Counted from the first letter of the stretch, positions 1 through 37,100 are shown. The stretch: 64,000 bases of DNA from Klebsormidium nitens (GCA_000708835.1 DF236957.1:186001-250000), one strand, 5' to 3'. The notes: generated from the letters alone by a model not told the origin. A program made the numbers and translations.

Positions 1-29
1 TTCTGATGTTGGTCAGTGCACTGGTGCAG

Positions 30-3000
30 GCCATCAAGGGCAAGCCCATAGCGTACCCTCCCCGCCCAAAGGGCCACCTGGCTTTCCTACAGTACACGTC
101 AGGCTCCACCAGTGACCCAAAAGGTACGCCAACGGACGCTGTTCGTTTTTTGCACCTGTTGGCCGACTGTGTGGACAGGTGGTTGCAATGATTTCGTCCT
201 TGATCAGAGGAGCAATAATGAGAACAACGTAACGTTCGGGTTGGAGACAGTCTGCCGAATGCTGGGCCACACACTCTTAGCATAGGGTTGAACAACTGGA
301 TCATGGATTATGTCTTCTTAGCGTTGACCACTGACCCTGTTTGCAGAAGCTACTCCAGGCAATGCAGGTTGCCAAGTCTATGATAGCTTCATCCTGTCCG
401 GGCCTTCTCTTTTGTCGACATTTCTACCGCCGTTGCATAGTTTTTGTTTGACATCGCGGTTGACATCGGCTTTCCTTCACGCCAGGTGTCATGATCACGC
501 ACGCCAACATCGCCCACAACTCGGACAACATCCGCAAGAACATCCGCCTCGATGCGCAGTCCGTCTTCTTGTCCTGGCTCCCCCAGTACCACGACCTCGG
601 GCTCATCGTCGCTTACATCAGCACGATGACAGCTGGCGCGTCAGGAATCTTCATGTCCCCCATCACGTTCATCAAGGACCCCCCCCTCTGGGTCGTCGGC
701 ATGAGCCAGTTCCGCGCGACGCACACGGCGTGCCCCAACTTTGCGCTCGAGCTGGCGGTGCGCAAGTTCCGGCCCGAGGAGCATGCGAAGAACGGGCTGG
801 ACCTGAGCCGGCTCGAAGCGATGCTCAACTGCGCGGAGCCAGGTGGGTGGGGCTCTCTTGGAAAGATCAGGGTTGTAAGTTTTCATTCCAAGCGACACGG
901 GCTGCATCAGGTTTTGGGAGGGTTCCTTATCCAAGCGATGGGCTTTGCTTCTGTTGTTGTCGCTCGGTTGGTCTTTGGTACGAGACCGGGCAAAAAGGCA
1001 CCGTTTGTCAGGACTCTTAACGGTCGATGACAGCTTGTTTATTGGACAGGGAACACTCATTGGTCTTTGGATACCACTGCCTCTTATTGCGTTTCTTGAA
1101 CAAACAGGTCATCAGTCTTGCTGTTTCTTCCCCTCCACCGTGTGCATGTTAAGAGAAGGACGCATGTACAACTTCTGCCTGGACTTGCCTCTTCTCCACA
1201 GCGCGTTTCTTCCTCTTGCCTCTCAGCCCTGCCACTAAGACTACCGACATGACCATTTTCAGTGGTCTAACTGCTCCGAAAGATCGCAGCGCAACTTTTG
1301 CCCCGTACGCTTCTGAGTTCACTGACTCGACCTGCTTGCAGTGCGCATCGACTCCATCGAGAAGTGGAACGCGACCTTCGTCCCGTACTGTTTCCACCCT
1401 GCGGCCATGTGCCCGTCTTACGGATTGGCGGAACACACCGTGGGACTCCTTTCGTGGGGCATCAAGATGGTTCCGGCCGCGAGCGGTGACGGGCTGTTGC
1501 ACTCGAGCGGGCACTGGAAATGCCAGGGAGAGGAAGAGGGGGACGCCGTTTTTGTGGATCCGGATACGCTGGAGCTGAGGGAACCGGGCCAGGTGAGGCT
1601 TCGAAGAGAACTTGTACGGGGCCTTGGGCCCAAAGAAAAGGACCCTTATGCTGAGGAGGTTTTTAAAAGTCAGGTATCTTAGGTTATGAGTTGCCTTGGA
1701 AGCCAAGGAAAGGGTTCCTTATCTTTGATTTGAGCTACCGCGCAAATAAAGGAAAGGGTCGATCGAGCAAAGAAGGCGATTGTGGAGGGTAAAGGTTGTT
1801 GTGGTTGGCTTCATGAAAACCCGTTGTCAAAGCGGAGCGGCGGCCGAGGCTGCGGGTGTCGGAGTCACCTTTTTGAAGCTGACGAGCAAACGTCATCTTT
1901 TGTGACGCAGTCGCGTTTTCTCAGGTCGGCAAGTTTCGCAAGTACAGACTACAACGATGGAAGATTAAGGCTGGGATGCAAGCTGTGGGATGGGCAGCCG
2001 AGCACGAAGGGTGTTGGTCTTTTATCTTCCTCTACTCGATGACGTCATTGTCCTCAAGCCGCATTGCCCCCAGGGTTCCTTGACACCCGCCGCTCCCTTT
2101 TCCAGGTGGGCGAGATCTGGGTGCGCAGCGCGAGTGTCGCGGCCGGCTACTGGCAGCGCCCAGAGCACACGCAGGAAGCGTTCCGCGCCAAGGTCGCCAA
2201 CAAGTCGGAGTGGGCGCACTACGACTGGCTGCGCACGGGAGATTTAGGGTTCCGGTTAGAGGACCAGCTGTTCATCTGTGGGCGGCTTAAGGACCTGATC
2301 ATCGTGCGCGGGAAGAACTACTACCCGCAGGATCTGGAGCTAGCGGCGACACTGGCGCTCGAGGAGGTGATCCGGCCGGGGTGCGTCGCCGCGTTCTCGC
2401 TGAGCGACGGGCCGGGCAAGTTCCAAGACCAGGTAACGGTTTTGTATGTTCTTGGATTCTTGGGTTGCAATGGTGGGTTTGAAGGAGTTTGCTATCTTAT
2501 CTGAACCTGTCTCGTCTGGTCGTTTCACGAAAAGATTTGGAGGTCTTCAGAATTTGTGGCCCAGGGGGCTACGGCTTTTGAGCGCGTTCTCTAAATCTGG
2601 AGAAGGAATTTGACGTTGCAAGGGTCGTGAAGGGCTTATATTTGTGCTTGAGCCGAAGTGAGAGACTCATCGTGCGACTAGGTCTTTTAAAGGAAGTGGG
2701 TGGCAAAGACCTGACTACGGGTTTGACGGGTTAGTTGGCGGATGGGTTAGTTCCTCTGGTCAAGCGTCGGTGGTCAAAATGACAGACAGCTCTTCAGCTG
2801 GGTGTGTGCCCTTGCCAGGACTCTGGTTTGGAGTTCACCAAACCCTGTGGTTCAGCCTGCAGTTACATTAACCCGTTCGTTAATCATTCGCAGGTGGGCC
2901 TGGTTGCGGAGGTCAAGAGCTCGAAGCTCCCGATGCCCCCCCAGCGCGCGATCGCGCTCATCCGACAAGCTGTGTTTTGGAGTCGACCAAACCCTTGGTT

Positions 3001-6000
3001 TCAGCCTGCAGTTAACTTTAACCCGTTCGTTAATCCTTCGCAGGTGGGCCTGGTCGCGGAGGTCAAGAGCTCGAAGCTCCCGATGCTTCCCCAGCGCGCG
3101 ATCGCGCTCATCCGACAGGCCGTCAGCGAGAAGTACGGCCTGGAGCTCGCGCAATTCGCGCTCGTCCAGCCGCGGACCATTTGCAAGACGACAAGTGGCA
3201 AGATCCAGCGAAGCAAAAACCGGGCGGCGCTCCTCGCGGGGACGCTCCAGATCATTTCGGGGGGATTGTTTGTGGACGACGGAACGCTGCCGCGGCAGGG
3301 GGGGCGAGAAGGAGCGGAGGGCGTGAGGGGGGAGGAGGGGGGGGAGAAGGACGAGACGGACCCGTTCAAGATCTTGGCGAGGTTTGGGGTTAAGGAACTT
3401 GACCGCGACGTGTTGAGCCAGGGGCTCGACTCGCTGCGGTGTATGGAGCTGCTGGCGTATCTGAAGGTGGGTTGGGGATAAGAGCAAAGGTCTCGTTGTT
3501 GGATTCTCGCTGTGGGATTGATTGACAGGATTGTTCCCACATTGGATTTATGCCATCCCCGTTAGGTCGATCCAACTTCCTCGAAGGCTGTGTTGAAAGA
3601 GAAGACTCGTTCAAAAACAAAACGAGAAAAATGGCGAATTTGTTTTTCGTCGATTCTGGCGATGCGAGTTTCTAGCAATTTGGTCCGCAGATAATGAGGC
3701 TGATGGGCAACAGGCGACTTTTGGAAGTCTCCCTGGTATCTCAACCGCCCATATGCGGTCGAGCGACAACTGCCCCACAGATGGTGTGACAGTCGTCATG
3801 CAAGCGCCGGCCCTTCGAAATGCTTCGAAAGTCGCCCGTTGCTCGCTTCTTCAACACCGTTATCGCACCCGTCTGCAGAGGCACGCCAACATCGAGATCG
3901 AGCCCACGCTTCTTGCGACGGTGCCGGCCCGCCAGCTGGTGGACGGCACGTACCAGTCAACACCCCTCCGGGTCCAGCGACCCTCCCTAGAAGCACCCCT
4001 CCAGGTAGGGTGTGCGGCTGACTTGGTTTTTCGAGTTTGTGCACTCGTATATTCAGGATCGCTCGTTCCTGTTCTGGGCGGTGTGCAGCATATTCTGTTG
4101 CTATTGAAAAATTAGGAAGAATGCAGCGGTCACAGCCTCATGCTCTGAACGCTGAACCCTCGAGAACCAACGGAGGTCCCATCTCTTTTAGGCAGATCCG
4201 CTTGCTTCCTTTCTGGGCGCATTGCATCTTCCAGATTCGTAAAGTACCAATCACAAGAGTACAGGCCTCATCTAGTCACAGCCTGAAACCCTGGAAGTAA
4301 CAATCCTCAAAACCTAACCCAGGTCGCCCTCTTCTCTCAGGGTCGCCCACTCCCGTACTTGGTAGTGTGCATCATCCAGACGGCGTTCATTTTGCTGATG
4401 GGCTTGCTCCTCGGCGCGGCCATTATTCCCACGTACCACTTCGTGGACCACGTGCTCGACACGCTCAAGACGCCCTTCTCCTACATGACCATTACCAGCG
4501 GAAACAAGGTGGGGCAGGGCCCCTTTTCCCAGGTGTTATTTGCTGCAAATTTTAATACGACGACAAAAAGGGCGGTTTCAGAATCTTAACATGGCAGGGT
4601 TTGCGAATCAGGGTCTTGGGATTCAGGGATGCAAGTTTTATAGGTTCTGTGGCAGTTGTTCTCTTGGCAGTTGTTCTCCCTCCACTTCAGCGAGTCTGCC
4701 TGTGATAAAATTGAGGGGACGGGTAGGGTTAGTATGGGGGTTAGGGTGGGTGCGGGTGCGGAGCGGGTGATTAACTGGGTTTCGATGTTAGTGTTAGCTT
4801 CGGGACCGGAGAGCTTCTCTCCAGCCACACCGAATGCTTACTTCCGCGTCTCACAAACGACTGCGAGTACAAACTTCGTGACGCAATCCCGCAATACTCA
4901 TGCAACCCATTGTTAAACAGCCCGTAGCATCGACTTACAACCCTTGTTAGGACATACATCGACCTAGGTACTACCTTTGCCTAACCGACCCGGGTTTGTC
5001 TTAACCAGGTGCACCGCCACAGCTTCCGCATCTACGGCCTGCTGCTGCCGTTCGCGGTTCCCCTCTGGATGGCAGCCTTCACCATCGAGGTGCTCATCGT
5101 CAAATGGATCGTCATCGGGCGCTACCGCCCCGGCTGCCACGCCCTTAACTCCTGGTGAGGATTGCTTTCTTTGGGATTTGTTTGGATCTGAGGGTTAAGA
5201 GTTTAAAGTTCGACGCGCAGTGGTGCCGAAAGGGCACATTCACGTCGAGGTGCTCGTCTTCAAAGGGGTTGTCATCGGGCGCTACCGCCCCGGCTGCCTC
5301 GCCCTCAACTCCTGGTGAGGTTCAACTTTTAGCTGTTTCCCTGAAGCAAAAAGAGGTCTGGAATTGAAGCTATGTAAATTTCAATTTACATGCGCCTTGG
5401 CATGAAAATGTCCCTGGTGTCCGCATCGGAAATGGTTTGTGACTGGGCGCTTCCGCCCTCGCTGCCACGCCCTCAGCTCTTAGTACTTTTAACTCTTTGC
5501 AGTAATCCCGCAGCGCCTAAGTCTGAAATAGAGCTTTCAAATTTCCATTAGACGCGCGTTATAGGCAACTTCAAGTGACGAGGCTCACTAAGTCAGTGAG
5601 ATGTTTACGGTCACGTGGATTGTCTTCGAGGCCACCGACTCAGCTTCTTCGCTCCAATTCCAATACGACCCCAGCTGTTTTGTGGGTCAAGCATTCTCTT
5701 AAAGAGGGCGTCAGATTCCAAGGTACAGTCGTGCATCTGAGTCCTGAGGACTCATCGGACGGCTCATTTTCCATCTTGAAAACTGCCTCCAGCGACCAAG
5801 GCTGCAGTACTGCGCGCTATCTGGTCGCAGGAGGGGGGCCCAGTCCCCCGACGCCCTCTTTAAGGCGTGATCATTTCTTGGAAGAAGACGTGGGCCCCAC
5901 GAATTGGGACGTCTTCTGGCAATCTTCGAAGGCTCCTGAACTTGCCAGACAACAAAAAGAGTGTGCGCTCTCAGCGTGCAGCGTTATCCTTGCATCGCAG

Positions 6001-9000
6001 TCTAAGAGCTCATCAAAACGCTCTTCTTGCGCCCTGTTTTGAAGTCCTTGTCAGGACGGAAGTTGGTATTTGAGGAAAGGTAAGAAGGAAGGACTTGACA
6101 TGTTTTGGACGGGAGGCAGTTCCCAACAGTTTCTTTTCATCGAACCGAACCGGGAAACAACTTGCTGTTTTAATCCTCAGGTATTTTTTGCGCTGGTGGT
6201 TCATGGACCGCGTGCTGTACATCTGGGAGGAGGTCGTCGGCGTCTACTGCGTCAACACGATCGTGCTGAACCTCTTCTACATATTCGGCGGCGCGCACAT
6301 CGCGTGGAGCGCCAAGCTGGGGGCTTATTTACACGAGTGGGCATTACACCACGTGGGCCCCCATGCCGAAGCCGACGGCCGGTTGGTCGCCCGGTTGATA
6401 TCCCCGGGGAGGCTGTACCTGAATAAGGTCATCGTCGGCCGCGGAGCGGTGGTTTCCGATCACACGGTCGTTCAACCGGGGGCCGTTGTCGCGCCCGGAG
6501 CAAAGCTCCGGCCGATGACGGTTCTTCTCGAGGGGAGCGCGACGGAGCCGGACGTAACGTACCAGGGCAATCCGGCCCGCGCTGTTACGCTGCGCGCACC
6601 GCTCAGTCGCGCGGGGTCGCCCAAGCGGACGAAATGCGGCCGGAGCGAAGCGGAAGTGACCGGAACGAGCGGAAAGGAATTGACCGGAACGACCGGAACG
6701 GAACTGACCGGAACGGAGGAGTCGGAGGACAAGAATTGGTGGGTGCTCGAGGCGGCGAAGATCGTGTTCGGGCTCCCGCTGAGCATCTTCCTGTTCACGT
6801 ACTGCCAGATTCCGATCATGGCGGTCTTTGAGATGATTCCGCGTGGGCGGAATCGGGCCGGAGCGGACTTTCGGTACAAGGCGCTCTTCTTCTTCGGGAC
6901 GCTCATCTTCGCGAGCATGGCCGTCGGCACGTTCATCACCATCTGCCTCAAGTGGGTGCTCTTCGGGCGCGTGCGGCCGGGTGAGTCGGCTTATGATCGC
7001 TACCTACCCTTCGCCCTTCACTTCCTTCGTTTCTTGGTTGGAGTGTGAGGTCTGCAAACTCTGGAAATGGGGGGTTACGCTATCTGCCCCGTCCTTCTCG
7101 TCGTATATACTCACAGTGTCGACCAAATGCCTCACGTAGTTGGTGATCCCTTTTCTGCTGGAACGATAGTATGTCGAGTGTGTCTTTCGGAGCGAAACAG
7201 ACAGGTTTATTTGTTCAGTCTTTCGTGGAGTGAGCGAACGTTATCGTCGATCAGGCTCTTGGCACGGGGGTATGTCTGGAATCGCTTGGGTAGTCTCTTC
7301 GCGAACAGATCTATGGAGTACTCTATTCACGATTGGATTATTTTCTACACGTGATGGTCCACTGACAAAGTGTGGCGCAAAAGCAGGCGGCAATGCGGTC
7401 AGAAAACGAGACACTTGTCTTAGCTGCTGAAGTTGACGTTCCTTTTCGGCTCACTACGTTATCCTTTCCAACAGGCCTTTGACATGACCTTTCTGGAAGG
7501 AGTTCGCAAAAGCTGATTGGACTTATTTCTGCCCCCCGCAGGCCCTTACAAGGACACCAAATGGCTCCAGTGGCGCAAGTGGTGGTTAGACCTGCTAACC
7601 GTGGTTTGCCAGCATAACCTCCTCGACGTCCTCGAGTCCAGCTTCTTCGTCAACTTCTGGCTCTCGGCGCTCGGCGCGCGCATCTGCGCGTCAACCAAGC
7701 TGCTGATCAGCTATACCATCCGGCCATACGAGGCCGACCTGCTTATTGCGGAGCCGGACACGTTTATCTCGGAGTCGTTTGTCAGCTGTGACGACGGGGA
7801 GGGCCACAGAGACCACGTGGTGTTCAAGCGAGGCTCCTGGTAAGGGTTCGTGTCGAGTATGTAAAAGGTTGTAGTTACAGAAAAAAGTCTGAACGCTGTC
7901 TACGAAAATCTTTCCGTATGTGTTTGGCTACGTGCTACTTTGGCCTGAGTTCTGATTCATTTCTCGTAGTTCGTCTTCTGCATTCAGGGGCTCAGGTTCC
8001 AAAAACAGGGTTCTAGAGGGGTTCTAGCGAACGTTGAGCTTATATTACAACCAAGTTTGCCTATGTATTCTTCATTTGAAGTGCGTTGACAAGTCTGATC
8101 GGGTCGGCTCCAACTTGTTCCGAGCGAAATCCTGAAGTAATTGTCCGCCAGGTGTCGCTAAAATCCTGTTTCGCAGACTCCCTGTTCATCCGCAAACGCT
8201 GCACCAATTAAACTCATTTGCTTCAAGCTCTTGCTCCCAATCTCACCACGAATCATCTTGGGCATCTCTTTTTCTCTCCCATTTCAGGACCGGTCTCGAC
8301 GCGGTGATCAAGCAAGGGGTGGTCGTCGGCGAGGGCTCTGGCGTTGGCGCGATCACATACGTGGAGGGCCCGCACGAGTCCTATCCTTAAACTCGCTGAT
8401 TTGTTTGTACTATCTACTCACGTTCCTCTAGGGGTTCAATCATCTTCTTTCTATTTTTATCCAGGACTGGCCTGGGCGCAGTGATTGAGCAAGGCGTGGT
8501 CGTCGGCGAGGGCTCCGGCGTCGGCGCGGTGACGTACGTGGAGGGCCCGCACGAGGCGCTGGCGGGGGAGAACGTGATGCTGTTCGGAAACCCCCCCATC
8601 GTGCTGCAGCACAAGAAGGCGCAGGAGGCCCTGAAGCGGATCAAGGTATGCGTGCCGCCTTATCCGGTCATTTCGAAGCGGTTCAGGGTGCTTGGTCGAG
8701 TCCATCATTGCCAGCTTCCGAGTTCGTAGCTTTCACCCCTGGAGCCTTTTCCGTCACCTCGTGGCCTGCTTCTGATGCGGATTACACGTAAGTTCTCCAA
8801 GTCCGTTCCCTCTCTCTTCCATCTACCCCTCTCTTCCATCTACCCTACCTGCTTCTTAAGCCCGGAAAACCGCATTTTCAGTTTTCGCACCTTGGATTTC
8901 AAGTTTTCTCCGGTCCTTCGTTCTTTAACAAGTTCACTTCCAGCTTCTGAGTAGTCGCTTCAAGCCGTTGTCTGAGCTACCGTCATTTCATCCCTCGACG

Positions 9001-10977
9001 GGACTTCCATCAACCATATTGAACCTGCTTGCCCAACCCACTCCGGTTCACTTTCAGCATGGGAGTCTGTCAAGCTTGGTCACCCTAAAACCTCTCATTC
9101 AGCTAAAACAAAGTTTCACGTCGGAAGCATCAACAACCCACTCTCTTTCCAAGAGTCGGGTCTATTCACCCGAAGGCCTCAACTTGTCGAACTTATCCCA
9201 GTTCCTTGTATTGTGCAGATTGGCACTCTGAAGCTCGTCTTCTTCCACACCGTCGTTCTCCTCCAGCGCATGGGCATCCTGGGCATCCTCGTCGTGTGCG
9301 CGATTCCGGGGCTCGAGTTCGGCATGGCGATCCACCGCAGGGGGATCCCCCTCGACGTGGAGCTACTCCTCTACGGGATTGGCATTCTGCTCTCGATTGC
9401 CACGCTCGCGGTCACGTCCATTGTGCTGAAGTGGGTCGCGCACGGGAAGTTCAGCACGGTGAGTGACCACGTCCCTGCTCTAGTGATTGCATTCGGTTTG
9501 AAGTTTGATACTTTTCACATCGTGCTGAAGTGGGTCGTGCACGAGAATCCTAGCACCTTGAGTCCTCAGTTCCGAGCTCTGTTATCTGCATCAGGTCTTA
9601 AGATGGTACTTGTCACGTTGTGCTCACGTCCGTCGGGCGCCAGTGCTTCAGCACTAACAGTGGCCGGTTTCTTGCTCTAAGTAATGCCGCGGTTTTACAA
9701 TTTGGTGCTTTCCAAACACCCGGGCAAACACCGGTCTGTTTGCCCGTCCATTATATTTTGTCTCTGCCACTTAGAAGAGCAGAATAGCGAGCGATTCATC
9801 CCCCTACTTCTTTTTTAAACTCAGCGAAAATAATTGTTGTCCGCTGGTGCAGTTTCTCAATGCTCTCCCGACCCTTTTCACATAAGAGTGACCCAAGATC
9901 TCGAAGAAAGTCGCTGAGAGGTGCGAATACATTTATGGTCCGTCGAAACAATTTCACTTGTCATGTAAAGCTTGCGCCTTTCTGATCCATGCTCAATCCT
10001 CTACAGGGTCCGCTGAAGCACTCGCTTTCGATTGGTACATACACGACCACCGACACGCTCGACAACTACATGGTCTTCCGCTTCGTGTTCCCCTTCATCA
10101 ACGGCTCTTATCTGGCGGTTCTCTTCCATCGCGCCATGGGCGGGCGCATTGGCAAGAACTGCTTCATGAACCCGGGCTCCTTCCGGGACCATGACATCAT
10201 CGCGGTCGGCGATGACGTCATCCTGGACGAGTGCCACGTGCAGGTGAGAGGAGACGTGATGCCGGGGTGTTCTGGGATTGGTTGTTCTGGTTTCGGGGGT
10301 GTTTTCAAAAACAGGAATGTTGCTTCCTGTCGACTGGTCCTATACAGACGGGGTTTTTTCAAGCAATTGTGTCCCCTGTCTTGGGGGACATGACGCACTG
10401 CTGAGAAAGGTGCGACTTGCTCGTTGGCTGTGTTTCTCAAATAGCGGCTATCGGGAACACTGCATGGCTGTTTTCTTCTCGCAAAGAGTCCCTGTCCGTC
10501 CAAAGTGAGGCTTGCTAGAGCTGCAGATTAGCCAGTCACCGGTTTTGATTCGGTCATCGTCCTACAGCGATTACAGCAGATGTCGTCAAGCTGCCACAAA
10601 TCGCTTTCAGCCCCTGTATGGAAGCTTAAGAACATAGGTCTCTGGTGCGTTCCACCCCGCATCGAAATCGCACTGCCGACCCCCGCCCGTTGTTTCTGCA
10701 GGGTCACAAGTTTGAGCACGGACACATCGCCTTTGACGTCACTGCCATCGGCTCGGGGTCCACACTGCAACCGGAGGCGATTTGCATGGCGGGAGACACG
10801 CTGGAGGACGGGGCCACGCTGGCCTCGTTAAGCAAACCCTTCCCCGGGTTACCGTGCTCTGCGGACCGGTACTGGGTGGGGTCTCCAGCGGTTAAGGCCA
10901 AGGTTATCCTGTCAAACGGGGAGGAGATGGAGGAAGCCGACAGTGGCTTGGGAGGGGGATACGATATGGATGTTTAA
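30..10977 (+). CDS. 5'-truncated multidomain protein: fatty acyl-AMP ligase (FAAL) - acyl carrier protein - three repeats of [TM helices + hexapeptide left-handed beta-helix] (TIGR02353 / Pls-like NRPS terminal domain)
   Basis: Exons 30-123, 486-842, 1342-1592, 2106-2432, 3044-3466, 3879-4004, 4341-4508, 5009-5154, 6181-6980, 7542-7839, 8465-8645, 9219-9458, 10007-10243, 10702-10977. All are GT-AG with consistent phases and total 3924 nt (1307 aa plus stop). FAAL motifs: FLQYTSGSTSDPKG, SWLPQYHDLGL, CPNFALEL, CAEP, YGLAE, GEIWVRS, WLRTGDLG, GRLKDLIIVRGKNYYPQDLE, KTTSGKIQR. ACP motif GLDSL near 3421-3435. Three modules carry KWxxxG[RK], G[AG]xI and [YFW]xG[NS]P[AP] with hexapeptide repeats. 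Confidence 0.92.
2826..3125 (+). repeat. Two-copy ~150-bp tandem duplication spanning an intron 3' end and exon start
   Basis: ACCCGTTCGTTAATCxTTCGCAG|GTGGGCCTGGTxGCGGAGGTCAAGAGCTCGAAGCTCCCGATG occurs twice, with acceptor AGs at 2892-2893 and 3042-3043 (offset 150). Confidence 0.95.
5078..5320 (+). repeat. Two-copy tandem duplication spanning an exon end and donor site
   Basis: TCGAGGTGCTC...GTCATCGGGCGCTACCGCCCCGGCTGCC..GCCCT.AACTCCTG|GTGAGG occurs twice, with donor GTs at 5155 and 5315 (offset 160). Confidence 0.95.
6653..6724 (+). repeat. Exonic 24-bp minisatellite (3 copies) encoding EVTGTSGK-ELTGTTGT-ELTGTEES
   Basis: GAAxTGACCGGAACG recurs at 6653, 6677 and 6701, in frame in the linker after the first beta-helix module. 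Confidence 0.85.
8251..8555 (+). repeat. Two-copy tandem duplication spanning an acceptor and exon start
   Basis: CAG|GAC.GG.CT.G.CGC.GTGAT..AGCAAGG.GTGGTCGTCGGCGAGGGCTC...TACGTGGAGGGCCCGCACGAG occurs twice, with acceptors at 8286-8287 and 8463-8464 (offset 177). The upstream copy runs into TAA at 8388-8390. Confidence 0.93.
9419..9563 (+). repeat. Two-copy tandem duplication of an exon end; the second donor is mutated
   Basis: CATTGTGCTGAAGTGGGTCGCGCACGGGAAGTTCAGCACG|GTGAGT versus CATCGTGCTGAAGTGGGTCGTGCACGAGAATCCTAGCACCTTGAGT (offset 99; GT changed to TT). Confidence 0.88.
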
Positions 10978-11005: not shown

Positions 11006-11168
11006 GAGAGAAAGATGCGCATGTATTGAGGTGCTGCGGTTTGATTGGGCTGTAGAGGAGAGAGAAAGCTGCGCATATATTGAGATGCTACGGTCTGATT
11101 GAGCTGTAAAGGGGAGAGAAAGCTGCGCATAGATTGAGATGCTGCGGTCTGGTTGAGCTGTACAGGAA
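11006..11168. repeat. 54-bp tandem repeat, 3 copies, just 3' of the FAAL gene stop
   Basis: GAGAGAAAGxTGCGCATxxATTGAGxTGCTxCGGTxTGxTTGxGCTGTA starts at 11006, 11060 and 11114. Confidence 0.92.
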
Positions 11169-14059
11169 GAGAGTGTAAAGGGCTGAGAAGGTCTACGTCT
11201 TTCGAAAAGGAAGAGGTATCTTTCAACGAACTTATGATCACTTTCGAGAAAGCTTATGTTTAGCTTAGCATTGGTCCAATAACGAGTCGCACCGCGTCAC
11301 GCATTAGCGTCTAGCAAAAGAGACTTTATAAAAAAAAAACTTACGAGGTAGTCGCATCAGCGTCTAGTAAGATACCTTAAACATTTTTCTTACAAGATAG
11401 TTCGAAGGCTATAAGTTCCTTAAGATTTTATTTTACGAGTCTCCAACTTTCACAAAGCGCAATATTGATTAAATAGTCTCAATGGTCGGCTTCTTGTAAC
11501 CTCGTATAAATCAGCTAGTGTGGCCATAGGCTCCCCTCGACATACCTAAATGTATGAGTCTGCTAAAACTGTCAACAAGGAGTTTTTTCTGCGTTACATG
11601 ATTTCCGAGGCTCAATCCAGCTCATATATGTCGAGAGGCTACGTCTCTCCGATCTGCAAACTTTCCTTGTACACCATACGCCGCCGGCTCGTCGTACACA
11701 ATCCGACTGTCAACGACATATGCAGCCCCCAACCTGCCATGAAACGCAGGCTTGAGGCTTTTAGCTAGCAGAGCCTGGGTGCCCCTGTAGCGGACAGCTG
11801 GCCAACTTGTGATATTCTGTTCCCAACGCCTGGCTCGATGCAAGCTGCATCCATTTGGCGCTCTCTGCGAGCTTTGCCACATTTGAGGCTTTCTGCAAGC
11901 TCCGCACACTTTCGGCACTCTCTGCGAGTCTCTAGCCACATGCATCGCTTTTGCAGCGTCGCTCAATATCTGGCGCTCTTGGCCCGATAGAATTCTTGCT
12001 TTCACCATATTTATTGTGGACTCTTGGTATCCGCATGTGCATGGGGCTTGTTGCGCCTGTCAGTGAAGCTATGTGCACGGCAATGCACCGAGTACCTTTT
12101 CCCTCTCCCCAAAAAACCGGACGCAGCAAAACAGGGCGTACCGGGGAAAGGGTTTTTAACGGCTCATCGTTGTGTCCTATGCCATGCAACAGCAGGGATG
12201 ACAAGCTATTTGCTGTGAACATGTTCGGGTAATCCGAGATGCCACCACCCAAACGTTAAGCCCAGTTGGTGACGCCGTGATGCACAAATCTTCCTCAGAC
12301 CTGGCGACCCGGCCAGCTGGCTACCATCCTCCCCCAAAGAGGCTTGGTGGTTGACCTAACCCGGCGGGTTGATGCATCACGTGCATGCATCCTTCCCGGC
12401 TCTTGCTTGTACACCAATCTGATGCAAGTTTTTATAAAATCGACCGGAAGAGGAGCTCTACCATGTCAACAAAGCCGGGGAACGTCAACAAGTGACTATA
12501 CAAGGCTGTCAATGGACCAAGATTCAAGACCGATGCTTGCCTATAATCTAGTCGTCCACAGCGTACAGTCATAGCCTTTTGTATTGCTCTAGCCTAAGCC
12601 TGTCAAGTCGCAGGATTGCTACAATTTGGTAGTAGCTTACTATTCCATAATAATAGACAATTGCTGGTGATTCTTTTAGCGTGCTTACTTAGGCTAGCAA
12701 TGCACAAAACTTGAGTTGATCGTTCATGCTACCATGATAGGGTTGAGGCATAGGCATAGGTAGAGTAGCTTCTTGACTGTCGAACTTGCATTGATTGTGT
12801 ACTTGCACTTCCAGGTCCATGGCTTAACCGCTACGGCCTTATAAAAGAAATATACATGATCCGGACATGCGGCTCGAATCAATCTGAGCCGCCATTATCA
12901 TGTCATCGTGTCATCGGACTCCGGGACGGGTCTTCATTTCGCCCACAAAGGAGTGTCGATCTTCCTCCACACCTTCATAAGCCAAAGGACCCCCCCGACC
13001 TGTTGCTGGAACGCGTTACGGCGTTCTGTAACCCGAGTGGGGGCAGGGTGAGCGGAATCACGCCCATTTGCGGCGGCCCACGTCTGCACGTCGAGGGCTC
13101 GCCCGCCCCAAGCTGGGAATCGGCAGCGTCGCCCTCCGGAGGGGGGGTGCCGTGGTCGGTGAAGAAGGGGGAACCGCACGAGGCAGGTGACTGAGCACTG
13201 CAAACTCCTCGTTCTCAGCAGTGGGGGGAAGACGAGCCTGATCGATAGGAGGTGGATCACTGGCGCGGACAGGAGCGGGGGAACCCTCACCCATTTGACC
13301 AAAACCTTTTTGAAATTTGCACCTCAGGGGGAAATGCAATTTGGCAAAGTTCTGGGGTTCACTTCATCAGGGGGAATTGCAACCGCAGCTACACTTCAGC
13401 TGGTGCGTAAGCTTGCTGGATTGAGCACGCATTGCCATCGCTGCTCTCACCAAAACCTTCGGAGCAAATGCGGTGTTTAATTGCAAAATCCATGATGCAG
13501 AGAGTGACTTTCTTCAATGTGCAATGCTGCAAGGAATTGCGACCGAACCTAGGCAGTTGCACCAGTTGCCATGTTCAGAACGCGCTCTCCCTCGTACAAT
13601 GCTGCTGCCTCGATCCGTGCGCGCCCGAGACGGAGCATGGCTTGCATCACTTTCAAAGATTGAGTAGCAACCTGGCCACCTTTTGTCAGCTTAGCAAGGA
13701 CTGGGGTGCAAGAGGCAGAAGTTGTAGTGCGGCTCTGCAAGCCCCCACTCGAAAACGCACGCACTCGAAAATCTCAGTTCAAACACTGCGCTTGTACTTG
13801 ATACAGGCTAAAGTAGCAACGTAGAGAAAGATCAAGACATGAAATGTACAAGAGAAACAAGAAAGTGTGATGCAAGAAAAGATTCTCGTTACACCACCGC
13901 AGCATCGATCTAGCAGGAAAGGGCAGTAGCCCAAACCTGCACTTCTGCCTGCAACCTTTTCCCATCCACTTTGCAGATTGAACGTTGTGTTATGTCAGAT
14001 TGCCCTCTGCGCATCAGAGACGTTGCTAGCCTGAGCTGACGCCAAAGGAGGGAGGCAGC

Positions 14060-34100: not shown

Positions 34101-37100
34101 AAGGAACTCTGACCCTAAAAAAAGGTCAAGCCATCCACGGCGCAACAAATGATTACTGCTGACACCATTCCTTCCCCACTCCCCTTACCTGTATGGCTGC
34201 ATCTACACGCAACGACCACCGCGTACTCCAGCCCCCCCTCGCTGAACGCACTCTCGGGGGGGGTCCCGCGTCCTCCGGCGGCGGGCCCCCTTTTTGAGAA
34301 CCGGGCATGCTGCTCGACCGTCTGTGCCCTCGTGGAAGGGGTGAGGCGCCCGGTAATTCCTTAACGTTGGAGTCTGATTCTGAGCGGATTAGGTGGGGGT
34401 CTGAACCAGGAGGATGTGGACCGGCGAAAAGGGAAGCGGGCCGCAGGATGAAGGAGTGCTGCTCGCCTGGGCGGAGGGGGAGGTTGGGGAGTGATTGAGC
34501 ATCGCCCACCTGCACATAGGATTAGGTTAAAGTTCATCCAGTGCAGGTTAAGCGGGCCGCAGTATGAGGTTAGGAAACGATTGGGCATAACCCACCTGCA
34601 CATAGGGTTAAATGGTTCAGTTAGTGGAGGTTAAGAAGATGCGACCCGGGGGGAAAGGATGAAGGAGTGCTGCTCGCCGGGGCGGGGGGGATGTTAGGAA
34701 GACGATTGGGCGTCACCCACCTGCACATGGATTAGGTTATGAGTCGGTTAGGGTAGGTTAAGCAAAGATGCAGACAGGGAAGAGGGGCAGTGGGCCGCAG
34801 AGGGAAAAGTGCTGCTCGCCGGGGCGGAGGGGAAGGTTTGGAAGAGATTGGGCGTCGCCTACCTGCACATAGGGTTGAATGGTTTTTTTAGTGGAGGTTA
34901 AGCAAAGATCTGGCCCGGGAAGAAGCGGGGCGCAGGATGAGGTTAAAGATTAATTGGGGCGTTGCCTACCTGCAGATAGGGTAGATGGTTCAGTTAGTGT
35001 GGGTTAAGCAAACATTTGGCGCGGGGAAAAGGGAAGCGGGCCGCAGGATGAAGAAGTGCTGCTCGCCGGGGCGGAGGGGGAGGTTGGGAAGAGATAGGGC
35101 GTCGCCCACCTGCGATGAGCCGACTTTATTGCGGTCGCTGTTTTCGTGCAAAAATTTTCTTGCACGGGAAAGGTGAGCAGAAACACCATATTTTGCACAA
35201 AGGGCTGGCTGCGGTGGCGGAAGATTGTGCGCGACTTAGTCGCCACCCACCTGGAGGTCTTAGGAATCCGGGCTCTCTTATTGGTCCATTTCTGACGAAC
35301 AAAGAACAGGTTTTGTGCAAAGAGACCAGCCATTTGCTTACAGGAACCGGCCCGCTAAGAGAGACTAGCTCGAGAACACAGCGTGCTTCACTCGATGTAA
35401 AGTACTTTCTTTCCCACGAGCAAGCAGAACTCGGAAATCCAAGCGGGAAAATGCTCCTCACCTCGACGCAAGCAACGTGCACCGGCAGCGGCCCGCTCCC
35501 GGGCGCCCCCGAGCGCCACTCCAGGCTGATGGAGTCCACGTACATGGTGACGTCAGCCGTCGGCCCAACCGGCGGCAGGACGTTCTCCACCGACACGCAG
35601 ATGAGCTGCTCCGCGTTGACCTCCGTCCCATATGATTCCACCATAAGCGGGTGGAGTACCTACGGAAAAGTCGGAAAACACGTGTCGTAAGTTGGGTTGT
35701 GCTTTGTGCCATACAATGCCATCATAAGTGTGAACGGATTGACTAAAGTGAGAGGTCAATTCTTCGGAAAAATAGCTAGATGAAGCTGACGTGCAGCTAG
35801 ACAGCTAGACAATCTACTCAACTGCGGAATGGACCGTCAGCAAAGGACGACTTGTTCGATTAGACGCTGAATTGCACATTTTCATGCAAATGAGTTGTCC
35901 GGTGATCGGCTCCTGTCCCAGGAGAGCCAATGGAAGTACCGAGCAGAAAGTGCTTCAGCAAATTTTAATGGCGGATTTGCATGTAACCCGCATGAACAGT
36001 GGATTCTTCACGAGTTGAAGCATTCGTCCATGCACTCAGTTTACCCGTCAGCTTGGATAGGACGTACGGAATTGAGAGACGACACTTGTGAGGGGTAGGG
36101 AGAATGTGGGCATGCCTATCTTGGGGTTCAAGATGTCGCTCGTGCGGTGTTGACACGCTACATCATTGAGCTCTGGCCCATGAAAAGACGAGAATAGATC
36201 ATGCCCAAGATCTGAGTTGATTCGTTGAAAGCAAGACGCAAGGGGTGCACATAGAGCTCTGGCCTATGGGAGAAAGGAGAAAGGAATATGCCCAAGCTCT
36301 GACTCAAGTTGTTGTTTAGAGATGCAAGGGGACAGGGACCAACGAGCACGCCCTACCTGCACGCGCTTTTGCCACCGTTTCCCCGGCACGTGCGGCCCCT
36401 CCAACCCACACTGCGGCGTAAACCGTTGCGGCTCGAGCGGTGCCCCCCTGAAGCTCAGCAGCCCCTCGCTTCCGAGCGCACCCCTTGCGAGATTTCCGGC
36501 CGCGTGCACAGGCCCCTCGCCCGCATTTTCCGGTAGGGGTGCCCCTCCGGCCGCCGCTCTCGCCGCCGCAGCGCCGAAGTTGAACGACATTTGGCGGGGG
36601 GGGGATGCTGGCGGGGTGGGAGATCGAGAGTTCTCGATTGGGAGGAGCCATTGAAGGAGGTCCCGTTTTGGATCGGGGGGGTAGGGCTCTAGTAATTGAG
36701 CCCGGTCGAAAGAGGGGGGGGCGGGAAACTCTGGAGGGGTAAGCGGATTTGCGGTTGAGTTGCCCCGCGAAAGTGGCGCTTGCTTGGGAGACTGCAGAAC
36801 AGCAGAGCAGAAGAATAAAGCCGATATCAATCCAGTATTCGCCTCGGTATTCGATGCTCCCCGACTTCGCAGGTATCAAGTTCTCAAATGTGGCAATAGG
36901 AGTCAGGGCGCAAAAGAGGGCAAGCTTGATTCTGTACCTTCCTGACGTAGATCTGATGCTTAGCTCCTCAGCCCTTTCAAGAAGCACAGAAGACGGCGTT
37001 GTCCAAGTACGCAGGCACGAGCAACGGAAGAAGCGCAACATGCACAACAACTAGGTGCGAAACGGGCTCGAGACGGACCTGCGCAGGGGGTGCGTCAAGC

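Follow-up and report, generated by a model that had tools for sequence, protein, structure and literature searches.

A spliced gene of Klebsormidium nitens joining a FAAL-type adenylation head and a probable carrier to a Pls/PosA-like triple membrane module

The stretch of Klebsormidium nitens DNA analyzed here (GCA_000708835.1 DF236957.1:186001-250000; 64,000 nucleotides [nt], referred to below as the window) carries at its left edge an intron-rich gene that combines a fatty acyl-AMP ligase (FAAL)-type adenylation domain, a probable carrier domain (acyl carrier protein, ACP), and a long membrane-embedded tail resembling the terminal region of the bacterial Pls/PosA proteins, among them Pls, the ε-poly-L-lysine synthetase. 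All coordinates are window positions on the plus strand, and the gene occupies positions 1 to 10977. Its exons, called from splice sites, reading phase, and homology, number 14; they have canonical GT..AG borders and consistent phases, are free of stop codons, and sum to 3,953 nt (1,317 codons). P0003 (1,749 amino acids), the best full-length relative, is collinear with positions 72 to 10920, and its first 212 residues remain unmatched, so that the window lacks the N terminus of the gene. The 5' end is cut off at the left edge, with about 205 N-terminal codons lying upstream, and the full protein, in which the FAAL domain would come first, most likely has about 1,520 residues. The domain order is a FAAL-type adenylation domain, the carrier, and three repeats of a unit consisting of two transmembrane (TM) helices ending in KWxxxG(R/K), two short helices, and a left-handed β-helix. 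A first-pass annotation made from the DNA sequence alone had described one spliced open reading frame (ORF) at 30-10977; a single gene of 14 exons is indeed found there, whereas its true span reaches position 1 and extends beyond the left edge. The features that the annotation listed, namely, the FAAL motifs, GLDSL, the three KWxxxG(R/K) repeats, and the hexapeptide and GxP motifs, are all present where it had placed them.

In the list of exons below, the family hidden Markov model (HMM) is a 729-position profile built from A1, an alignment in which the tails of 23 non-bacterial proteins are combined with those of 11 bacterial ones of the Pls/PosA type (34 in total), and tail profile scores are given per exon. 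The ortholog is L006, a 157-kb metagenome contig of a related alga, to which we were led by the relative P0002 (79% identity to the exon I frame). RNA joints refer to contigs from four sequencing runs that were aligned to window positions 2425-8424.

1-123, plus strand: exon A, cut at the 5' side by the window edge; adenylation motif LQYTSGSTSDPK at 87-122; Pfam AMP-binding, E = 2e-6; ortholog exon at L006 3189-3287.
486-842, plus strand: exon B, core of the FAAL N-terminal domain; NCBIfam FAAL families, E = 1e-19 to 1e-28; PDB 3KXW, E = 2e-20; 91% amino acid identity to the ortholog.
1342-1592, plus strand: exon C, with YGLAE at 1419-1433; the stretch where a FAAL-specific insertion would fall.
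2106-2432, plus strand: exon D, with GEIWV (2109-2123), RTGDLGF (2232-2252), the hinge, and the start of the C-terminal subdomain; PRK05850, E = 6e-31; PDB FAALs, E = 2e-24.
3044-3466, plus strand: exon E, which completes the FAAL domain (KTTSGKIQR, the A10 lysine motif, at 3185-3211) and leads through a linker rich in Gly and Glu into the carrier, of which it encodes the first half, including GLDSL; PDB 7R7G aligns at the A10 region; RNA splices 2432 to 3044 and 3466 to 3879.
3879-4004, plus strand: exon F, second half of the carrier; spliced in all four RNA runs; 88% amino acid identity to the ortholog.
4341-4508, plus strand: exon G, TM helix 1 (4356-4436); family HMM positions 6-49, E = 3e-8; RNA joints.
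5009-5154, plus strand: exon H, TM helix 2 (5030-5101) ending in KWIVIGR (5102-5122); family HMM 49-94, E = 3e-16; RNA joints.
6181-6980, plus strand: exon I, two helices (RWW motif), β-helix module 1 (about 6290-6583), a disordered linker, TM helix 3 (6752-6829), and TM helix 4 (6881-6949) ending in KWVLFGR (6950-6970); family HMM 96-330, E = 3e-60; TIGR02353, E = 6e-9.
7542-7839, plus strand: exon J, helices and first part of β-helix module 2; family HMM 333-432, E = 4e-19; RNA joints.
8465-8645, plus strand: exon K, remainder of module 2, ending in GNPPIV; family HMM 436-488, E = 5e-11; TIGR02353 profile positions 413-461, E = 0.013; the RNA letters are those of this copy and not of 8285-8378.
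9219-9458, plus strand: exon L, TM helix 5 (9234-9314) and TM helix 6 (9363-9428) ending in KWVAHGK (9429-9449); family HMM 501-578, E = 4e-6; ortholog exon at L006 13976-14209.
10007-10243, plus strand: exon M, helices and first part of β-helix module 3; family HMM 587-659, E = 4e-17; TIGR02353, E = 1e-5; 95% amino acid identity to the ortholog.
10702-10977, plus strand: exon N, which completes module 3; it includes the His that never varies in the family (codon 10705-10707) as well as GSPAVK, and ends with the stop codon; family HMM 660-724, E = 2e-16; TIGR02353 profile positions 634-695, E = 3e-4.

The head contains the adenylation core motifs, including the A10 lysine (87-122, 1419-1433, 2109-2123, 2232-2252, and 3185-3211), with LQYTSGSTSDPK-G-VMITH spanning the exon A/B junction (87-502). 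NCBIfam and PDB searches both place FAAL families and structures first, in agreement with the FAAL-type assignment made initially. Thus, the top NCBIfam match of the ORF that includes exon D is PRK05850 (E = 6e-31), followed by FadD32, FadD21, and FadD28; the AA-adenyl-dom family scores 1.7e-12, and PRK06187 (3e-15) is the next family named as a CoA ligase after the FAAL-like PRK07768. The best PDB sequence matches are all FAALs (Legionella 3KXW, the polyketide synthase [PKS]-linked 7R7E, FadD23, FadD28, and FadD32), with E values of 2e-20 for exon B and 2e-24 for exon D, as against 1e-8 or weaker for acyl-CoA ligases and amino-acid adenylation (A) domains; for exon D, the top 14 PDB matches by E value are FAAL or FAAL-like entries. 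Full-length relatives match FAAL families with E values of 1e-87 to 1e-108, and their C-terminal subdomain is DIP2-like, which is the FAAL type, rather than AMP-binding_C. The spacing between YGLAE and GEIWV is 54 residues, compared with 42 in Pls A domains, 48 to 86 in most of the relatives checked, and 151 in one of them. It could be argued that the head activates some other acid (amino, β-amino, or aryl) and that the enzyme makes a Pls-like homopolymer, inasmuch as the adenylation specificity is not readable from these data and a FAAL-specific insertion is not demonstrated. However, amino-acid adenylation domains score more than 10 orders of magnitude worse than FAAL profiles and structures, and the C-terminal subdomain of the relatives is of the DIP2/FAAL type and not AMP-binding_C as in Pls; we consider this alternative quite improbable.

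Behind the FAAL-type head, positions 3422-3436 encode GLDSL (Ser codon, 3431-3433). An intron between exons E and F interrupts the carrier domain; Pfam PP-binding produces a partial match on half of the domain (E = 0.16), and two builds of our own carrier HMMs yielded no significant match at the exon level (best E = 0.002). The relatives have clear PP-binding matches at the corresponding place, and a carrier domain is probably present here. Its fusion to the head would agree with the FAAL property of charging holo-ACP and refusing CoA. The annotated ACP is therefore upheld with respect to its serine, which is in place, and less firmly with respect to the domain as a whole, which is intron-split and matches weakly exon by exon.

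Exons G to N encode three repeats, each comprising a TM hairpin that ends in KWxxxG(R/K) and a left-handed β-helix region; the hexapeptide regions of the three modules end in GNPARA, GNPPIV, and GSPAVK, respectively. In Pls itself, which polymerizes lysine, the A and T domains are accompanied by six TM helices and three tandem domains (PMC7179176), and in the window gene, too, six TM helices in three hairpins alternate with three tandem C domains. Positions 6-724 of the A1 HMM are tiled collinearly by exons G to N. Module 1 of P0003 aligns to module 1 of Pls, and its modules 2 and 3 align to modules 2 and 3 of Pls, with E values as low as 2e-27, and bacterial Pls/PosA proteins have the same TM pairs and the KWxxxGR motif. 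Per-exon matches to TIGR02353, the Pls/PosA terminal domain, are collinear as well (exon I, 6e-9; exon M, 1e-5; exon N, 3e-4; exon K, 0.013), and an NCBIfam scan of open frames recovers this family in two later frames (4e-10 and 2e-5). The homology to TIGR02353 proposed in the first-pass annotation is thus borne out in the order of the matches but not in their strength, as the scores are below the curated cut-off of 423 bits; judging from the score and the type of A domain, the protein would not be a TIGR02353 member, yet it appears to be built on the same plan.

Structural comparisons point in the same direction. An AF2 model of the tail of a choanoflagellate relative, P0006 (pLDDT 88, pTM 0.90), superposes on the Atlas clusters named Pls/PosA with TM-scores of 0.77 to 0.80 over about 670 residues, and two of its modules match a Streptophyta Catalase+Hexapep Atlas cluster (TM-score 0.51). 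The AF2 model of exon I of the window gene (pLDDT 84) consists of two helices, a β-helix, a disordered linker, and a helical hairpin; in a Foldseek search of the PDB, it matches with a probability of 1.00, and its solved neighbors are all trimeric β-helix proteins. Further support for the hexapeptide fold comes from Pfam Hexapep (E = 0.008) and PDB entry 9GVA (E = 5e-5), while the PDB search by sequence and fold retrieved no Pls-type structure. With the HMM tiling, the alignment of P0003 to Pls, and the P0006 model all in favor of the Pls-like triple module suggested at the outset, the C-terminal two thirds of the protein are homologous to, collinear with, and, as far as the models go, structurally equivalent to the TM-C1-TM-C2-TM-C3 machine of Pls/PosA. 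The A1 alignment contains five invariant columns in total, one of which is the module 3 His, present in 34 of the 34 sequences, including the bacterial ones, and kept in exon N (GHKFE); module 1 has a conserved Arg at the matching position. The module 3 His is likely to be the catalytic base.

The ortholog locus keeps all 14 exons in the same order, with 64 to 95% amino acid identity. Its upstream exons match residues 3-230 of the relatives, and its first called frame begins some 70 residues ahead of the FAAL core, and no additional domain was found in that part. Comparison of the ten exons that have equal lengths in the window and in L006 gives dN of 0.097, dS of 0.98, and dN/dS of 0.10; the values for tail exons are 0.04 to 0.14, not above those for the head. 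The DNA alignment of the two loci ends at the exon borders, and the introns are unalignable. Purifying selection has acted over both head and tail. These data bear on the possibility that the tail is a non-catalytic membrane anchor or scaffold and that the FAAL-ACP head passes its acyl group to separate enzymes. Such a role would agree with the low TIGR02353 scores, with the count of invariant columns across the family, which stops at five, and with the absence of the His from modules 1 and 2. However, the tail exons have dN/dS values as low as those of the head, none of the conserved features (KWxxxGR, the G-x-P-A ends, and the invariant His) has been lost, and Pls itself, according to a study cited in PMC7179176 (its reference 23), needs all three domains together for activity. 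A purely structural tail is therefore improbable in our estimate.

The head and the tail also appear to be transcribed together. Parts of the gene are contained in 18 sequencing runs, presumed to be RNA, in which about 0.3 of the words match exons only. The GT..AG joints E/F, F/G, G/H, H/I, and I/J in the RNA contigs coincide exactly with the modeled junctions. Run X1 provides a single 4,130-nt contig that extends from 7817 (in module 2) back across exon E and has 2,188 nt more; before 3041, it reads as the end of exon D, so that a single assembled and spliced transcript includes both FAAL and tail exons. At most about 1.1 kb of mRNA is left upstream of the window. Separate transcripts for the FAAL and C-terminal exons, which would have argued against the fusion, are accordingly not what the spliced contigs contain, although assembled contigs alone cannot prove a single RNA molecule. 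The contigs of the other three runs end within exon E, at a G-rich low-complexity stretch (3300-3349), and such breaks in three of the four runs are what two neighboring genes, one for a FAAL-ACP protein and one for a Pls-like membrane protein, or a faulty assembly could produce. Yet the break falls inside exon E, in the G-rich low-complexity stretch, and is crossed by the X1 contig; we take it to be an assembly effect and not a gene border. With an uninterrupted reading frame, dozens of natural one-piece relatives, and an ortholog of identical order, two genes are very unlikely. At the other end, RNA contigs from three runs continue about 1.85 kb past the coding end, pointing to a long 3' untranslated region or an overlap with a neighbor.

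The search of all libraries retrieved 328 relatives, and among the best 150 representatives, about 60 align with the window protein in its head as well as in its tail. The relatives that are named or can be placed are eukaryotic: two come from Salpingoeca kvevrii and one, P0161, is a paralog from Klebsormidium nitens itself; others lie on contigs whose neighboring genes encode TMEM144, UNC-93, TPX2, RGS, or PRP39. The domain architecture varies among them. Thus, P0007 has a WW domain in front, P0064 and P0161 have an inserted amine oxidase, and P0161 combines the amine oxidase with the FAAL, two carrier matches, and the same tail. A word search with the P0161 tail found, besides P0161 itself, only one metagenome protein. 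A further architecture is that of P0009 (uncultured eukaryote, L004 10001-18763, 2,920 residues), in which a FAAL-ACP-ketosynthase-ACP arrangement is followed by the same Pls-like tail. Here the tail would be the end of a small polyketide module and looks like an off-loading domain; as a ketosynthase and an ACP precede it, the tail is expected to accept acyl-ACP as its donor.

In a tree of the module 1 region, the non-bacterial and the bacterial Pls/PosA sequences fall on opposite sides of one branch (SH-aLRT 88); all non-bacterial rows are labeled FAAL-type, with the head confirmed for about 17 of 27 and the others being fragments or unmatched. The window protein clusters with P0001, P0002, and P0152, and P0161, with its long branch, is basal in the group. 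A scan for related loci with one peptide pattern brought up L002, a bacterial Pls/PosA gene of the ordinary kind with 36% identity to Streptomyces Pls over its whole length, and one short archaeal match, and we make no claim that the FAAL type is absent from prokaryotes.

On these grounds, we think it probable that the enzyme charges its own carrier with a fatty acyl group, which is then passed, at the membrane, to the amine or hydroxyl of an acceptor. In the scheme we propose, the head would adenylate a fatty or other long-chain carboxylic acid, which would then be loaded as a thioester on the phosphopantetheine of the carrier serine (codon 3431-3433). Because the TM helices come as hairpins, all soluble domains would be placed on one (cytosolic) face, where the carrier could reach the three β-helix domains. 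The amine or hydroxyl of the acceptor would attack the thioester, probably with the assistance of the module 3 His (codon 10705-10707), and the N- or O-acylated product would be released into or across the membrane. The acceptor could be a separate molecule, with one transfer per cycle, or a functionalized fatty acid or growing chain, giving a polymer. Several observations weigh against this proposal. The interval from AEP to VGEIW is about 14 residues shorter than in the PRK05850 FAAL profile, in the same domain for which the FAAL-specific insertion is not demonstrated; the carrier domain is non-significant when scored exon by exon; and TIGR02353 scores are far below the cut-off, at 12 to 35 bits for each exon and 105 to 152 bits for full-length relatives. 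In addition, both the part played by the His and the joint working of the three domains in a single active unit are inferred.

The second form of acceptor corresponds to the extracellular polyester or lipid coat that had been envisaged in the first-pass annotation. In this scenario, an ω- or mid-chain hydroxy- or amino-fatty acid would be added repeatedly to a free chain by an iterative polymerase, and a polyester or polyamide would be extruded as a cutin- or algaenan-like coat. All characterized users of the machine are iterative polymerases (PMC7179176), the whole assembly of six TM helices and three domains is retained (TM-score of about 0.8 to Pls/PosA models), and the window protein has the linkers that are reported to set polymer length in Pls (reference 20, as cited in PMC7179176). 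Moreover, some relatives and the plant kin (PMC8460268) have oxidase- or catalase-like domains that could add hydroxyls. On the other hand, the window gene lacks a tailoring domain, ordinary fatty acids have no second nucleophile, so that the monomer would need its own, and self-polymerization is unlikely for P0009; with the machine placed after a ketosynthase in that protein, polymerization is no more likely than one transfer of the acyl group to an external acceptor. The family also occurs in choanoflagellates and other protists, for which no such coats are known, and no polymer has been linked to any member. A polymeric product or surface coat finds no support here, and iterative polymerization is, in our view, rather unlikely; the idea of a Pls-type polymerase for functionalized fatty acids whose extruded polyester or polyamide would represent a new route to a hydrophobic surface polymer seems doubtful. 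The reading that we favor remains that of an acyl transferase fed by its own FAAL and carrier.

Compared with Pls and PosA, the window protein shows the same succession of adenylation domain, probable carrier, TM1-2, C1, TM3-4, C2, TM5-6, and C3, as well as KWxxxGR after the hairpins, the invariant C3 His, a collinear alignment, and a predicted fold with a TM-score of about 0.8. It differs in having a FAAL-type head without AMP-binding_C in place of an A domain for lysine or another diamino acid, in scoring below the TIGR02353 cut-off, in lying across the tree branch from the sampled bacterial proteins, and in being encoded by an intron-rich eukaryotic gene. FAAL-ACP didomains (FadD32, Legionella FAAL 3KXW, and the HapA type; PMC11837247) have the closest adenylation domain and a carrier fused directly behind it; however, their partner is a PKS or nonribosomal peptide synthetase (NRPS) module, whereas here it is a membrane-embedded Pls-type machine in the same polypeptide. 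The left-handed β-helix acyltransferases (maltose and galactoside O-acetyltransferases, the N-acyltransferase AntD, and γ-carbonic-anhydrase-like proteins) share the fold of each module but are soluble homotrimers that use acyl-CoA; in the window protein, three unlike copies are located in one chain between TM hairpins, and the presumed donor is the fused carrier.

Plant FAAL-like domains associated with HemY/amine-oxidase and catalase domains have been described by Patil et al. (2021; PMC8460268), who give their function as unknown. These proteins and P0161 resemble the window protein in having a FAAL-like head in a streptophyte, but the window gene contains no oxidase or catalase domain. The earlier remark that the plant relatives are uncharacterized fits both that paper and the Streptophyta Catalase+Hexapep Atlas cluster. 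The text and supplements searched for PMC8460268 do not mention a hexapeptide or Pls-like tail, nor does a 2025 review of FAALs (PMC11837247) mention a Pls-like tail, and full-text literature searches (FAAL with polylysine synthetase, TIGR02353, and Pfam domain names) found no description of the fusion.

The FAAL-type proteins found here make up a sizeable family, undescribed in the literature searched. Its members come from streptophyte algae as well as from a choanoflagellate and uncultured protists, and some large plant proteins, functionally uncharacterized, are its kin. To our knowledge, the NRPS world has no membrane-embedded, template-free polymerase other than the Pls machine, which has so far been tied to cationic polyamino acids. 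In the window gene, which is conserved, transcribed, and eukaryotic, this machine appears to be fed by a fatty-acid-activating head. Identification of the product would add a new class of membrane lipid conjugates or a new route to lipid polymers, and it would give the plant FAAL-like proteins their first function. Should the polymerase version be true after all, the gene would represent a previously unrecognized enzymatic route to a surface polymer in an alga of the streptophyte lineage, close to where land plants arose, with related enzymes doing the same in many protists.

The introns of the gene have a peculiarity of their own. Four of the 13 carry tandem, decaying copies of the adjoining exon edge together with its splice site, with periods of 99 to 177 nt and identities that fall from 94% to 60%. 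Such repeats have been called "mirages" in amphioxus (PMC3087553). They are distributed as follows.

2865-3123, 5085-5488, 8285-8555, and 9419-9700, plus strand: the mirage regions, copies together with their parent edges.
2865-2973, plus strand: copy of the acceptor and start of exon E, 94% identical to 3015-3123; RNA joins 2432 to 3044.
5245-5488, plus strand: two copies of the end and donor of exon H (91% and 61% identity); RNA depth near zero; joint from 5154 to 6181.
8285-8378, plus strand: copy of the acceptor and start of exon K (86% identity); the RNA differs from it at 13 places and continues as the sequence after 8555.
9518-9700, plus strand: two copies of the end of exon L (71% and 60% identity).

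The copies at 2894-2971 (in frame and followed by GT), 5245-5320, and 8285-8378 were considered as extra or alternative exons and ruled out, as the RNA contigs skip all of them. Two other candidate coding segments were also discarded: an additional exon between C and D, because exon C already supplies 83 residues, compared with 82 in P0003, and a conserved block 30 nt upstream of exon D, which is intronic by reading phase and by the VDP...GQ/VGEIWV motif. The ortholog locus has mirages of its own, mostly at other junctions (8236-9150, 5005-5218, 9606-9668, 11847-11936, and 13737-13871 of L006), including five partial copies of the exon G start, which suggests that these arrays turn over quickly between species. 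A tandem repeat with a period of 106 nt and 1.9 copies at 34850-35051 of the window is probably another mirage. The intron between exons G and H (4509-5008, 500 nt) is missing in L006, where the two exons are contiguous in frame at 9341/9342; this is an intron gain or loss between close relatives.

Among minor observations, the intronic segments 4716-4773 and 5697-5749 match many RNA contigs in all four runs, with unrelated flanks on both sides; a dispersed repeat or transposon fragment shared with other transcripts is the probable explanation. The disordered linker between β-helix module 1 and TM helix 3 contains an in-frame 24-nt repeat in three copies (6643-6715), which encodes a TGT/ELTG-type octapeptide. 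Directly past the stop codon, at 11006-11173, there is a 54-nt tandem repeat in 3.1 copies.

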